From: Octopus sinensis
Taxonomy: Eukaryota
Direction: 5' to 3'
Length of the DNA: 64,000 nt
Assembly (NCBI RefSeq): GCF_006345805.1
Contig: NC_042997.1
Location: 110,546,001-110,610,000, forward strand
Shown here one piece after another: positions 27,201 through 39,537 of this stretch. Position 1 is the first letter of the stretch. Each line of letters starts with the position of its first letter. Below the pieces are notes generated by a model that was given only the letters and a program-made list of their open reading frames with translations, was not told the origin of the DNA and made no database searches. Both the position numbers and the translations under genes were made by a program.

Positions 27201-27467
27201 TTGCCCTTCATCCTTTCAAGGTTGATAAAGTAAGCACCAGTCACACATTGGGGGCAATGTCATTGATTAGCCCTCTCCCTCAAAATTGCAGGCCTTGTGC
27301 CCATAGTAGAAAGAATTATTATAATTATCATGTAACTTACCTAGTGGATCCTCTCGCCCTTTGACGTCAGGGATAGTAAAGACTCCAGCAATTTCATGGC
27401 CGGATTTACGTAACAAGTTATAGACCTCAGCGCCAAAAACACTCTGTCCTATAATGGCAATTCTCAT
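199..27467 (-). CDS. ALDH1L1: 10-formyltetrahydrofolate dehydrogenase (ALDH1L1/ALDH1L2 co-ortholog), multi-exon, 3'-partial; exons 27341-27467, 23810-24044, 9125-9290, 7364-7465, 6724-6813, 2976-3110, 1489-1617, 199-284
   Basis: Manually spliced exons (127+235+166+102+90+135+129+86 nt) keep one frame with GT-AG boundaries: [12 protein letters not shown]...[17 protein letters not shown]...WADDGLDTG...[24 protein letters not shown]...[14 protein letters not shown]. Catalytic His106 and Asp142 fall at the same residue numbers as in mammalian FDH. The phosphopantetheinylated Ser motif is present (Ser352). The ALDH domain lies outside the window. Confidence 0.97.
1489..1617 (-). CDS. ALDH1L1: ALDH1L exon (129 nt) [20 protein letters not shown]...ESNLK
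   Basis: cttttccag acceptor, AAG|GTAAAG donor; matches the QLEDGKMILAS and LELTEAE segments. Confidence 0.92.
2139..2816 (-). mobile_element. Non-autonomous Helitron-like element with an internal partial duplication (period about 360 bp)
   Basis: Minus strand begins A|TC at 2816 and ends CCGGGTACCTCAG-CTAG|T at 2139; the ATTACCATTAAT...CTGTTTAT block occurs at about 2162 and 2524. Confidence 0.65.
2976..3110 (-). CDS. ALDH1L1: ALDH1L exon (135 nt) [10 protein letters not shown]...[11 protein letters not shown]
   Basis: tatttacag acceptor, ATG|GTAAGC donor; LILFGNDDKM-like motif. Confidence 0.94.
6324..6571. repeat. 31-bp minisatellite, 8 copies (GATCCCTCCCCGATGCCGTAAGTCTTCTAGC)
   Basis: Unit starts at 6324, 6355, 6386, 6417, 6448, 6479, 6510, 6541. 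Confidence 0.95.
6724..6813 (-). CDS. ALDH1L1: ALDH1L exon (90 nt) [30 protein letters not shown]
   Basis: ctatttcag acceptor, CAG|GTAGGT donor; near-identical to [27 protein letters not shown]. Not in the supplied ORF track. Confidence 0.96.
7364..7465 (-). CDS. ALDH1L1: ALDH1L exon (102 nt) [34 protein letters not shown]
   Basis: ttttcttag acceptor, AAA|GTAAGA donor; matches the AVRLIAEGKAPRLPQPEEGATYE segment of FDH. Not in the supplied ORF track. Confidence 0.93.
9125..9290 (-). CDS. ALDH1L1: ALDH1L exon (166 nt) [23 protein letters not shown]...FPEGIKAM
   Basis: tcttttgtag acceptor, ATG|GTAAAT donor; contains Asp142 (GLDTG). Confidence 0.97.
12443..15290 (-). mobile_element. Older LTR-less Gypsy pol fragment (PR-RT-RH-IN) of a family related to the 48.9-58.8 kb element, in an ALDH1L intron
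   Basis: ORF fragments with [14 protein letters not shown]...[36 protein letters not shown]; colinear with 55090-57945; frameshifts; no LTRs seen. Confidence 0.95.
18900..20210 (+). mobile_element. Degenerate RTE-clade LINE 3' fragment
   Basis: [32 protein letters not shown]-terminal [17 protein letters not shown] zinc finger; (GAT)n-like tail. Confidence 0.88.
21119..23295 (-). mobile_element. Non-autonomous Helitron carrying an internal satellite
   Basis: On the minus strand begins A|TC at 23295 and ends CTAG|T at 21119, with a subterminal hairpin GACCCG-gcaaaga-CGGGTC. Confidence 0.75.
21160..22760. repeat. AT-rich minisatellite, core ATGTGTACATATTACATCTATACATCT plus variable (TA)n, unit roughly 35-45 bp
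   Basis: Dozens of tandem units visible by eye. Confidence 0.95.
23810..24044 (-). CDS. ALDH1L1: ALDH1L exon (235 nt) [13 protein letters not shown]...[17 protein letters not shown]
   Basis: ttttgcag acceptor, TG|GTCAGT donor; contains catalytic His106 (YHPS). Confidence 0.97.
24440..24880 (-). mobile_element. Tigger/pogo-like transposase N-terminal fragment (CENP-B HTH)
   Basis: Degenerate translation [24 protein letters not shown]...STVLTK and [24 protein letters not shown]. Confidence 0.7.
25370..25720 (+). mobile_element. Dispersed SINE-like repeat (family D; copies at about 11610-11900, 17735-17830, 59230-59480)
   Basis: Recurring GTGCAAGTGGCTGAGCACTCCACAGACACATGTACCCTTAACGTAGTTCTC...GATTCAGC sequence. 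Confidence 0.75.
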
Positions 27468-27477
27468 GCTGCTAAGT
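27341..27477 (-). CDS. ALDH1L1: ALDH1L exon containing the internal ATG (27467): [42 protein letters not shown]
   Basis: Acceptor ttttttccag ends at 27478; donor G|GTAAGT at 27340; 127 coding nt from the ATG; formyltransferase N-terminal motif. Confidence 0.96.
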
Positions 27478-27889
27478 CTGGAAAAAAGAAAAACATCAGA
27501 TCAACAAGGAATGGCACTCAAAGGATGGCACTGATTAAGAGAGAGCTTCATAATCCGTTCCATTGATAGAAGTATATCATAAAGAATGAATCGGGTTTGT
27601 CTTTAAAGAACTGCAAAAGGCTTTAGGGTTGATTTGACCAAATGATGAACAACCACAAATCATCACTTAAGACCTACACCAATTTGTTGGTGACATGTAT
27701 GGCACAGTAAACACACACACTCACATGGAGGTTGGAATATCTTCTTAGCTGATAGGAATAGATTGATGCCAACAAGAAATGACCAATTAGACTGCTATCT
27801 AGATAATATCGTGTGTAGAAGATGGGATAACACAGTGGAGTTATGAGTTGGATCTTCAGTGACTGGGATGAAGAACAGTGGTAGGCTAC

Positions 27890-37000: not shown

Positions 37001-39469
37001 AGAGAAGAGAGTAGGGCACTGAGTTATTTATTATATCCTTCCTGTTGTATACATTTGAAAGTCGTTGGTTGGTATACAGTATGTTATTTCAACAATTCAT
37101 TTATAGATTTTATCAGTTGTTTGGCTACGTGGTTCTGGTCTAGAATTATTGTTAAGGGTCGTATTCTATCGTCTTTGATGTTTTAAAGTTGTTGTGTTTC
37201 TGTTACAACCACGAGATACATCAATAAATGAAGGATTAATATATTTATATAATAAATGTAGCTAAACCCTATGGTATCATATATCATATACAAAACACCA
37301 GTCCCAAATGCAAGTGAAACTGTCCGGGTTTTTCCTCAACTCTGCTGGTTCCCAACATATACAAAACTCCACGCAGTTTTCAATGGCTCGTTACCTCATT
37401 TTCGCATACCTTGCTTGTCATTTTGCATTAATATTTATAGGGCGGACCATGACCACCCTCAAGCACCTATTCTTTATCTTCAACGACCAGAAGTCTTCGC
37501 TAGTTAGGAATACCTACCTTCGCTAGTTAGGAACAAGACTCCCAAACAGACAACCGAGTGATGTTCTTTGTACGCGAGTGCGTGTCTAATTGAATATTCA
37601 GCAAAAGTACAACCAACCAACTTACGATGTTCGACTAAAACAACAACAACAAAAAATATGTCGGGTGACTCCGTCTACATCTTCACACTTTTACGTGTGG
37701 GGAGGGAGGGTGTAATAAGTTATCTTCAAAGCAGACAAACTATTCAAGTAAATACCTATTTCTTTACTACCCACAAGGGGCTAAACACAGAGGGGACAAA
37801 CAAGGACAGACAAACGGATTAAGTCGATTACATCGATCCCAGTGCGTAACTGATACTTATTTAATCGAGCCCCCGAAAGGGATGAAAGGCAAAGTCGACC
37901 TCAGCAGAATTTGAACTCAGAACGTAACGGCAGACGAAATACGACTACGCATTTCGTTCGGCGTGCTAACGTTTTTGTCAGCTCGCCGCCTATTCAAGTA
38001 AATATAAATGACGATGTGAAGCTCTGTAAAAATGAGGGCCGAATCTGGCTGCCAGGCTATTTCTTATCAATTCTCACGAGTCAGCAGTTTGTTTAGACTA
38101 GGACAGACACAACAGTTAAATATACATAAATAAATAAATTCGTTGACACTAAACATGATTTTAGTTAATCTAACCGTTAAACAACATATATGCATGCACA
38201 CAACACTTATGCATATTCATGAACAGGAAACAAAACAATGTCGAAGGAAAGAGAATCGGTAAAAATCGCGAGTTTGGATAAGTGGGTATATTATGGAGAG
38301 GACGGACCCAAAGAGCTAAAGAAAGGGTTTCCATATTTTTTAACATATGCTTAAGGAAAAAAAACCCAGAACAATGAATTGCTTGATTTGCTGAAAGCTA
38401 AGACATGAATATAAATTAAATAAATTCCGGGTAATTATTTTATCGACTCCGAGAAGATTGATACCAACAGAATTTGAACTTGGATACATTAGCTTCGCTA
38501 AACACGACGTCTTATCACTAGAATACTTCGATAAAACCAAAGAAGTTTATTCGATTTTTAGTATGTTACTGGCACTTATTTTATCGAATAAAATAAGTGA
38601 TTTTGAGAAAATCCCAGCAGGAAGGTCGACTGCCATCGGGATGTACCGAACAAAGTAGAAGGGATAAATTTAAATAGGCCTATACAAGTGAATTTTAAAG
38701 GGAACCCAGGCAAAAAAAAACATTCCTTTAATTTGTGTGTCTGTGTGATTGTCCAGGTATGATAGGAAGAAGAAGCCTGGTAGCCCTACCTTTTGTCTCT
38801 GGGTTAGAGGCAGATGTTTTTTTATGGACCATTTTTGCGATTCTTTCGCTCCCCTCACAGATTCTAAATGCTGCGCTGACGACAACAGCAACAAAGTTTT
38901 CCGACGTAGAATGAAGGAAGTCGCAGAATTATTGCCAAATATAAATAAATTACTTTTTTAAACCCAAAATATTCGAGATATTTGGAGGAGGTGGTCTGCT
39001 AACCACGAAGTTGATGATGCCTCGTCACTAAAGTGAGGTGCATGGCTGTTCTAACGTCTCAGCCTCGCCATCATTCTTCCTGCCAGTCTTCTTGGATTGT
39101 TTCTGTTCATAAAGTGGAAAATATAACTCTAAAGATAAAAAACGGCAAATCAGAACCGAATTTACCTCTTTATATCTCCACTAGCGAATGTATATAAGTG
39201 CCGATATGTATTTAATGTTCATGCGTATACAAATTATGTCTAACTTGTTTAAATTATATTTATCATTTATATAAAACCGGTTACAAATAAAAGTTGGTGA
39301 AAAAGTTTTATAAAGTTATGTTCGTGTGTTATAAAGTTATGTTCGTGTTTTCTAAAACTGTTTTATAACAAAGACTGGAATATTTCAGAGATAATGAGGT
39401 GTGTGGAAGGTTGCACGATAAAAGATAATTGTGAATATAATTTGAAAAACACAAAACATTTTGTCTTAC

Positions 39470-39537
39470 CTCCTCCGTAAAGGCAATATTCGACTAACTG
39501 TCCCAGCTGACAGCGATAACAACCTGTTTATATACAT
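39470..39537 (-). CDS. ALDH1L1: Putative upstream exon of ALDH1L encoding a mitochondrial targeting presequence (MYINRLLSLSAGTVSRILPLRR)
   Basis: ATG at 39537, 22 codons plus AG, then a strong donor GAG|GTAAGA at 39469. The phase-2 end joins the acceptor at 27477 (A CTT AGC AGC ATG) in frame, giving ...[15 protein letters not shown]. The peptide is Arg/Ser/Leu-rich with no acidic residues. Confidence 0.75.

Follow-up and report, generated by a model that had tools for sequence, protein, structure and literature searches.

One gene with two in-frame starts can serve two compartments, as is the case for FPGS and for MOD5, HTS1 and VAS1 in yeast, and localisation switching in the ALDH1L family was reportedly described by Krupenko et al. 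in 2015. Among folate enzymes, SHMT2/SHMT2α likewise supplies two compartments from one gene (PMC7584446), the long form bearing a mitochondrial leader and the short form, which begins at a downstream in-frame Met, acting in the cytosol or nucleus. In vertebrates, mitochondrial and cytosolic oxidation of 10-formyl-THF, which produces CO2 and NADPH, are instead the task of two genes. ALDH1L2, with a leader of 22 aa (PMC6650503), is a gene apart from the cytosolic ALDH1L1 and has been attributed to vertebrate duplication (PMC7654619, PMC6831610); the mitochondrial enzyme has been described as a vertebrate innovation (PMC7654619).

We analysed a stretch of 64,000 nucleotides from Octopus sinensis (hereafter the window), the minus strand of which carries the 5' third of an ALDH1L/FDH (10-formyltetrahydrofolate dehydrogenase) gene. 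The gene exits the window at the left end after approximately residue 360, and of the acyl-carrier linker the start alone lies inside. This identity, assigned in an earlier note from the DNA letters, is confirmed by Pfam analysis of the predicted spliced product (Formyl_trans_N, E 4e-45; Formyl_trans_C, E 4.5e-09) and by its matches to the solved FDH structures 1s3i, 7rlt and 2bw0 (E 1e-120 to 1e-125, ~63-65% identity). Residues 27-311 of the product align with residues 1-286 of the solved cytosolic enzyme (E about 1e-120), and the alignment retains the motifs YHPS and GLDTG, which we take to contain the catalytic residues of the hydrolase, His106 and Asp142 in rat FDH numbering. The similarity of the window protein to the two vertebrate paralogues, ALDH1L1 and ALDH1L2, is about equal (~63%). 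The features of the locus are as follows.

39470-39537, minus strand: candidate first coding exon, consisting of the ATG at 39537, 22 codons and 2 nt; encodes MYINRLLSLSAGTVSRILPLRR(R)
39462-39469, minus strand: donor GAG↓gtaagaca, from the consensus heptamer and weight-matrix rank
27478-39469, minus strand: proposed intron 1, 11,992 nt, phase 2
27478-27505, minus strand: acceptor with a ctgat branch-like motif, an 18-nt pyrimidine tract and CAG
27341-27477, minus strand: exon 2, 10 nt (A CTT AGC AGC, giving ..R L S S) followed by the ATG at 27467, Met1 of cytosolic FDH
23810-24044, minus strand: exon 3, Formyl_trans_N
9125-9290, minus strand: exon 4, part of the FDH product
7364-7465, minus strand: exon 5, part of the FDH product
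6724-6813, minus strand: exon 6, in which Formyl_trans_C begins
2976-3110, minus strand: exon 7, part of the FDH product
198-284, minus strand: later exon with approximate limits, in which the acyl-carrier linker begins
35500-37000, no strand: CpG-domain boundary between the depleted 1-36 kb and the normal 36-58 kb

The first ATG (39537-39535, minus strand) is located in the context ttgcccATGt, with C at -3 and T at +4, and a stop codon is found in frame 13 codons 5' of it. From this ATG a frame of 68 nt remains open to 39470, where gtaaga follows. Exon 2 is preceded by the acceptor ttttcttttttccag↓A at 27478/27477, after which the 10 nt ACTTAGCAGC lead to the second ATG (27467-27465), with A at both -3 and +4. 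The earlier note had reported a 68-nt exon joining exon 2 in frame, and the donor, acceptor and open frame indeed read in this way. Its description of a weak first ATG likewise holds, as does its equation of the ATG at 27467 with cytosolic Met1, given that Met27 of the predicted join aligns with residue 1 of cytosolic FDH. Within the 5' region of the spliced sequence, the only ATGs are those at 0, 78 and 148; therefore no ATG in any frame separates the two starts, again as noted earlier.

Exon 2 is an internal exon, as evidenced by the strong acceptor 10 nt before Met1 and the CpG-depleted surroundings. The CpG observed/expected ratio is 0.17-0.55 over 1-36 kb of the window, except for 12-16 kb, where it locally reaches 0.56-0.70, and this depletion argues that exon 2 does not lie at a promoter. 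Across the 8.5 kb upstream of exon 2 the ratio is 0.21-0.45; it climbs to 0.8-1.1 only from ~36-37 kb, and 36-58 kb forms a CpG-normal domain (0.8-1.2) with the candidate exon ~3.5 kb inside. Over the 18.5 kb preceding exon 2 (27478 to 46000, minus strand), no AG↓GTRAG heptamer occurs other than the donor at 39470. Scored with a rough weight matrix, this donor ranks third of 1146 GT sites and first within 36-46 kb, and its score equals those of the gene's own best donors. Together, the strong acceptor, the CpG-depleted domain and the best donor of the zone provide indirect evidence supporting an upstream first exon in roughly this region.

TATA-like matches flanking the first ATG were dropped as promoter evidence, because TATAWAWR occurs 7 times per kb on the minus strand. 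Since these motifs are uninformative, transcription could start 3' of the ATG at 39537. In that case, or if the true first exon is a non-coding one located elsewhere, the gene would encode an ordinary cytosolic FDH with a 5'-UTR intron, like vertebrate ALDH1L1 and the FDH genes of other molluscs, and the leader frame would be a coincidence in AT-rich sequence rich in Arg, Ser and Leu codons. We assign this reading a substantial probability, though one short of even. It draws support from four other GT sites with similar weight-matrix scores, including those at 37518, 38790 and 41064; however, should the exon be included in transcripts that begin 5' of its ATG, the extended protein would be made regardless.

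On balance, we judge the chances to be even that the exon at 39470-39537 is a first exon encoding a mitochondrial leader, and that one gene yields both cytosolic and mitochondrial FDH. Transcription would most likely begin in the CpG-normal zone at around 39.5-41 kb, and we infer that the donor at 39470 joins the first exon, across the 12-kb intron, to exon 2 at 27477. Ribosomes initiating at the weak-context first ATG would produce a precursor with an acid-free, Arg/Ser/Leu-rich extension of 26 residues ending in RRL↓SS. This precursor would enter the mitochondrial matrix and be cut there to about the size of the cytosolic enzyme. Ribosomes scanning past the first ATG would next reach the Met1 codon, which has A at -3, and from there translate the usual cytosolic protein. 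Both compartments would thus be supplied by one gene, the cytosol receiving most of the product.

The two forms might also arise from two promoters or first exons rather than by leaky scanning, some transcripts including the ATG at 39537 and others beginning 3' of it or at a different, non-coding first exon, to give tissue-specific cytosolic and mitochondrial forms as with SHMT2/SHMT2α. Alternative first exons were an option in the earlier note, the CpG-normal zone holds further plausible donors, and the SHMT2 precedent is documented (PMC7584446). No sequence feature, however, separates two promoters from leaky scanning, and TATA-like motifs are too common to place start sites; we consider this arrangement very improbable. 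SHMT2α differs from the octopus case in having a documented second transcript (PMC7584446), whereas the octopus case is a prediction from the genomic sequence.

The predicted leader has 26 aa and a net charge of +5, with five Arg, no Asp or Glu, six Ser/Thr and six Leu. When presequences are defined as net positive, acid-free stretches of 15-50 residues in which Arg, Ser, Leu and Ala are abundant, it falls within the definition in both length and composition, and its composition lies inside the range of the leaders of ALDH1L2 and of invertebrate homologues. R-3-type motifs of the processing peptidase follow R-X-(F/Y/L)↓(S/A). The end of the leader, R-R-L↓S-S, fits this short and common pattern, which 15 of 594 candidate exons match. 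A signal peptide was rejected as an interpretation, as the sequence lacks a long hydrophobic core and its last residues are RRR.

Compared with vertebrate ALDH1L2, the octopus gene belongs to the same enzyme family and has a similarly short, basic and acid-free predicted leader directly before the formyltransferase domain. The leaders of ALDH1L2 and of invertebrate homologues carry R-[RKS]-[FLC]-S-[ST], and the motif reads R-R-F-S-T in ALDH1L2 and R-R-L-S-S in octopus; it is separated from the domain by 9-10 residues in the former and by none in the latter, and the Met1 position is occupied by Leu in ALDH1L2 but by Met in octopus. The RRxS motif shared with the ALDH1L2 leader was rejected as proof of homology: the motif is a generic one for processing sites, and because exon 2 always supplies the LSS half, every candidate exon ending in two basic residues would fit it.

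The same peptide offers some support to the cytosol-only alternative introduced above. Its maximal hydrophobic moment of 0.49, although inside the range of known ALDH1L leaders (0.41-0.96), is reached by 24-78% of shuffled versions of the peptide, so its amphipathicity is not significant. Among the 594 ATG-to-GT candidates in the 36.5 kb upstream, 21 pass a crude filter for presequence-like composition. Against coincidence, the best donor of the promoter-like zone closes an in-frame, ATG-started, acid-free frame with five Arg. Of 7483 arbitrary GT sites, 15.9% close an in-frame ATG frame of at least 18 aa, and 0.37% one without Asp or Glu and with at least five Arg/Lys; the latter rate becomes about 2% when the five best donors are allowed for. 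In shuffled regions, such exons with a GTRAG donor numbered 0.07 on average and at least one was present in 5% of shuffles, under stricter criteria that were chosen post hoc. The exon at 39470-39537 is the only candidate to join the lack of Asp/Glu, five Arg, a GTRAG donor and a basic-basic-hydrophobic-Ser-Ser junction, and a presequence-like composition coinciding with a top-ranking consensus donor is uncommon.

Homologues fall into two classes at the Met1 position. Met is present in all 45 homologues without an extension, and Leu, Ile or Phe in all 17 with a presequence-like extension. The latter include leader-bearing invertebrate ALDH1L proteins, which resemble the octopus prediction in their presequence-like N-termini, such as those of Nymphon striatum (sea spider, KAG1651981.1), of Timema (stick insect) and of a further invertebrate contig, L001. 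In L001, exon 2 has Leu in place of Met1 and a separate exon 1.4 kb upstream encodes MRRIYSRALVRRCSSR, an arrangement like that proposed for octopus. Unlike octopus, these three have Leu or Ile at the Met1 position, so that their genes can make the long form only. The octopus gene combines the leader frame with a retained Met in good context, as would be expected if both starts were used, and the restriction of leader-bearing homologues to Leu, Ile or Phe at this position speaks for use of the retained Met as a start.

The same comparison bears on the possibility that the leader ATG alone functions as a start, Met27 being internal and cytosolic function absent or provided by a paralogue outside the window. 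Several invertebrate homologues, including those of Nymphon and Timema, that have a leader and no Met here offer a parallel for such a mitochondrial-only enzyme, and the L001 protein depends on its upstream exon. Yet C at -3 and T at +4 flank the first octopus ATG, A precedes the second at -3, the stretch between them is free of ATGs, none of the 17 leader-bearing homologues has Met at the Met1 position, and the mollusc relatives start at Met1, making this reading very improbable.

Relatives within the molluscs are more favourable to a cytosol-only enzyme. Met1 of octopus aligns exactly with that of vertebrate ALDH1L1 and mollusc FDH, and FDH genes of Solemya, Candidula and Plakobranchus share with octopus an intron just 5' of the start codon. 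Their acceptors lie 42, 42 and 20 nt before Met1 with stops in frame between, so that their first exon is non-coding, whereas the 10 nt in octopus are open and the candidate upstream exon would supply an in-frame ATG. In L005, a contig that is cephalopod-like but more distant, the acceptor precedes the ATG by 3 nt, a phase unlike that of octopus. The five distances of 42, 42, 20, 10 and 3 nt do not differ by multiples of 3, as expected of untranslated sequence, and together with the non-coding first exons this suggests that the segment has been evolving as such. In a fourth contig, which is mollusc-like, the corresponding exon resembles a first exon close to a promoter. A close relative (L003/L004) shares the acceptor and the 10 nt without any change, which is uninformative because neutral divergence is only ~10%. 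With the spliced N-terminus and with 311 aa of the product as queries, no spliced cephalopod product was present among the protein-collection matches, all of which are of at most 544 aa, full-length FDH models apparently not being among them; a representative search gave further leader-bearing homologues but no cephalopod. An orthologous leader exon was sought through a 64-aa antisense ORF covering it, and this ORF gave no homologues. The earlier proposal that one gene yields two forms is thus in keeping with the acceptor, the CpG domains, the donor, the leader composition and R-3 motif and the pattern at the Met1 position, but is weakened by the non-coding first exon of three molluscs and the acceptor phase of L005.

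If the leader is real, the mollusc comparison would allow a tentative account of its origin, which we consider possible but doubtful: the octopus lineage may have turned an untranslated first exon into a presequence by gaining an in-frame upstream AUG, with leaky scanning then serving both compartments. This presupposes that the FDH genes of other molluscs serve the cytosol alone and begin with an untranslated exon. A less likely variant is that octopus keeps an ancestral dual-use state, which vertebrate duplication later split between two genes. If one invertebrate gene supplied both compartments, this would represent another route to the compartmentation that vertebrates achieve with two, and would bear on whether the leader originated in an untranslated exon or in an ancestral leader. 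It would also imply that a distant leader exon can be overlooked when automated gene models begin at Met1. As a new instance of one gene with two in-frame starts, similar to SHMT2/SHMT2α, it would employ a mechanism already well known, so that the gain would concern the evolutionary history of one-carbon metabolism and not a new principle.

A repeat or transposon origin of the candidate exon was rejected, because it is single copy in the window; no transposon ORFs were found in the CpG-normal zone before 44 kb. The CpG-depleted proximal 8.5 kb of intron 1 contains SINE-like repeats and microsatellites.

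The exons of the 10-formyltetrahydrofolate dehydrogenase (FDH/ALDH1L) gene were located by FDH probe mapping and reading of splice sites.

Exons of the window gene, each bounded by an AG acceptor and a GT donor
27477-27341, minus strand, exon 2
24044-23810, minus strand, exon 3
9290-9125, minus strand, exon 4
7465-7364, minus strand, exon 5
6813-6724, minus strand, exon 6
3110-2976, minus strand, exon 7
about 284-198, minus strand, a later exon

Joining the first seven exons, with the candidate leader exon (39470-39537, minus strand) counted, gave a 933-nt open frame, of whose product residues 27-311 correspond to residues 1-286 of solved cytosolic FDH (1s3i, 7rlt and 2bw0; E 1e-120 to 1e-125). 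The catalytic motifs YHPS and GLDTG are conserved in this alignment, which also places the Met encoded by ATG 27467 on cytosolic Met1, as the earlier note had stated, and the protein matches Formyl_trans_N and Formyl_trans_C in Pfam. The gene crosses the left window end after about residue 360, so that the carrier and aldehyde dehydrogenase domains fall outside the view.

The leader frame starts at ATG 39537 (minus strand, context ttgcccATGt), 13 codons downstream of an in-frame stop, and runs for 22 codons plus two bases before closing at 39470, where gtaaga follows; the exon is single-copy within the window. The acceptor at 27478/27477 (minus strand) combines a branch-like ctgat motif with a pyrimidine tract of 18 nt and a CAG, and exon 2 opens with ten bases (A CTT AGC AGC) ahead of ATG 27467 with its A at -3. 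ATGs occur in the spliced 5' part at positions 0, 78 and 148 only, in any frame, so none separates the two starts. Re-reading of the window sequence bore out what had been said of the exon frame, both ATG contexts, the in-frame join and the lack of an intervening ATG. A possible tandem acceptor was also observed in 27467-27477, where a second AG (acttag/CAGC) follows 6 nt after the main one and, if spliced to, would leave the frame intact, with ..RR-SS-M in place of ..RR-RLSS-M.

A presequence-like frame is by itself not rare: 21 of 594 right-phase ATG..GT candidates in the 36.5 kb upstream lack acidic residues and carry at least five basic ones. When all GT sites of the window were treated as pseudo-donors, 15.9% closed an in-frame, ATG-initiated frame 18 residues long or longer, and 0.37% closed one that had at least five Arg/Lys and no Asp/Glu. 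The leader donor is the only AG/GTRAG heptamer on the minus strand between 27478 and 46000; a rough weight matrix put it in third place among 1146 GT sites and at the top of those in 36-46 kb, level with the best donors elsewhere in the gene. With the five best donors taken into account, the chance of frame and donor coinciding was about 2%. Under stricter criteria, set post hoc, an exon had to be 18 aa long or longer, free of acidic residues and closed by a GTRAG donor, with a basic-basic-hydrophobic-Ser-Ser junction; shuffled regions yielded 0.07 such exons, with at least one in 5% of shuffles. The hydrophobic moment of the leader peptide was not higher than in shuffled peptides, and the TATA-like matches on both sides of its ATG are uninformative against a background of 7 per kb.

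ALDH1L1 and ALDH1L2 are separate genes in vertebrates, the mitochondrial ALDH1L2 having arisen by a duplication that can be traced back to bony fish (PMC7654619, PMC6831610). Its leader, 22 aa long (PMC6650503), is represented by MLRRGSQALRRFSTGRVYFKNK preceding LKLALIGQS, and similar leaders were found in the sea spider Nymphon striatum (KAG1651981.1), Timema stick insects, a psyllid and several eukaryotic contigs. Most leader-bearing homologues carry R-[RKS]-[FLC]-S-[ST], with R-R-L-S-S as the counterpart in the window gene. This pattern is generic for processing-peptidase sites (R-3/R-10), so that it supports presequence function and not common descent. In an invertebrate contig (L001), exon 2 starts cag/GGTGCTCTAAATTCCTTACGT (GALNS-LRIAIIGQ) with no Met and so cannot do without an upstream exon. 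Such an exon, at a distance of 1.4 kb, encodes MRRIYSRALVRRCSSR; FDH/ALDH1L genes thus do occur with a separate leader exon. In front of this exon stand GC-rich, promoter-like sequence and, about 4 kb away, a Nudt16-like ORF (L001 189-413 and 4619-4666); no upstream Nudt16-like ORF of at least 90 aa was noticed in the window, without a specific search.

The most telling comparative pattern is the residue at the Met1 position in a tally of 101 homologues. Met occupies it in all 45 homologues without an extension and in 0/17 with a presequence-like one, which have Leu (15), Ile or Phe; among those with other extensions, 31/39 have Leu. Leader-bearing homologues in this tally thus never have Met here. 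The window gene has both a leader frame and a Met that is kept in a good context, as expected if both starts were used. That the gene serves mitochondria only seems most unlikely.

Evidence against a coding first exon came from the 10 kb upstream of the FDH gene in three molluscs.

Acceptor distance from Met1 and in-frame stops between acceptor and ATG
Solemya velum, 42 nt, TAG
Candidula unifasciata, 42 nt, TAG and TGA
Plakobranchus ocellatus, 20 nt, TAA

Because of these stops the protein is not extendable by an upstream exon, and the pattern in the three species, as read from sequence, is a non-coding first exon with a cytosolic enzyme. A fourth, mollusc-like contig (L008) has CpG-rich sequence with a TATAAA, and an in-frame stop upstream of Met1, and has the look of a promoter-proximal first exon. 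Farther removed, the cephalopod-like contig L005 matches exon 2 with 88% identity in protein and only 72% in DNA, and its acceptor, 3 nt ahead of the ATG, is in phase 0, as against phase 2 in the window gene. Acceptor-ATG distances of 42, 42, 20, 10 and 3 nt suggest that the segment behaves as untranslated sequence. Both the stops and the altered phase favour an ordinary cytosolic gene whose upstream frame is there by chance, a reading to which we give appreciable, though less than even, probability. A close relative (L003/L004, neutral divergence about 10%) shares the acceptor and the ten bases, in a stretch too short to weigh. The protein homologue search returned no spliced cephalopod product, all matches being at most 544 aa for an FDH of about 900 aa, so that full-length models, annotated cephalopod ones included, probably escape it. 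A search for the orthologous leader exon gave none from any species.

CpG observed/expected is 0.17-0.55 over most of 1-36 kb, climbing locally to 0.56-0.70 at 12-16 kb and standing at 0.21-0.45 in the 8.5 kb that precede exon 2; past a sharp boundary at 35.5-37 kb it is 0.8-1.2 up to 58 kb. In invertebrates with gene-body methylation, the transcribed body is depleted of CpG except for its first few kb past the start site, and this would put the start site somewhere from 37 kb upward. Judged from its strong acceptor and the depletion upstream, exon 2 is not a first exon. The candidate exon, at 39.5 kb, lies about 3.5 kb into the CpG-normal zone, a position in which one may expect a first exon, and retroelement-derived ORFs start at 44 kb. 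The transposon-rich 44-58 kb stretch is without CpG depletion, which suggests that this genome methylates gene bodies rather than transposons.

The proposal that one ALDH1L gene yields cytosolic and mitochondrial forms, by leaky scanning or alternative first exons, thus draws support from the Met1 tally, donor rank and CpG zone, and is opposed by the three molluscs and the L005 phase; we put the chance that the leader exon is real and both forms are made at about even. Were the exon used and transcription to start upstream of 39537, only a minority of scanning ribosomes would initiate at AUG1 (C at -3, U at +4), giving a precursor imported into mitochondria and cut near RRL/SS, and the rest would meet no further AUG until AUG2 and make the canonical cytosolic enzyme. 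Should the mollusc pattern be the ancestral one, this lineage would have gained its leader from an exon that was formerly untranslated. An alternative promoter or first exon, very unlikely in our estimate, could do the job as alternative start sites or first exons do for SHMT2/SHMT2α (PMC7584446); the evidence does not tell it apart from leaky scanning. Two in-frame starts are a well-known device for dual targeting, so the gene, if real in this sense, would be another example and no new principle, albeit a neat evolutionary case within one-carbon metabolism.

The window also contains direct repeats (48865-49164 and 58381-58680; each at least 300 nt, 100% identical, 9516 bp apart) enclosing ORFs with RVT_1, RT_RNaseH and integrase-core matches (55476-57941, plus strand). 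This looks like a recently inserted LTR retrotransposon with pol split over several frames, and within the putative element lie four tandem copies of about 300 bp (50328-51500) and two identical 301 bp copies (53232-53773). ORFs at 44330-45372 (minus strand), with weak below-cutoff matches to zf-RVT and DUF5891, are probably the tail of a non-LTR retroelement. Related ORF-like sequences recur at 28829-29263 (minus), 29502-29837 (plus), 31936-32075 (minus) and 59607-59921 (plus), one motif being MLK(R/W)(C/R)FL.ATCTG.., which suggests a dispersed SINE-like family; two copies inside the proposed intron 1 are a source of spurious presequence-like candidates. Long (CA)n and CATA/TGTA-type low-complexity tracts occupy 33748-34098, 30245-30564 and 60793-61239.
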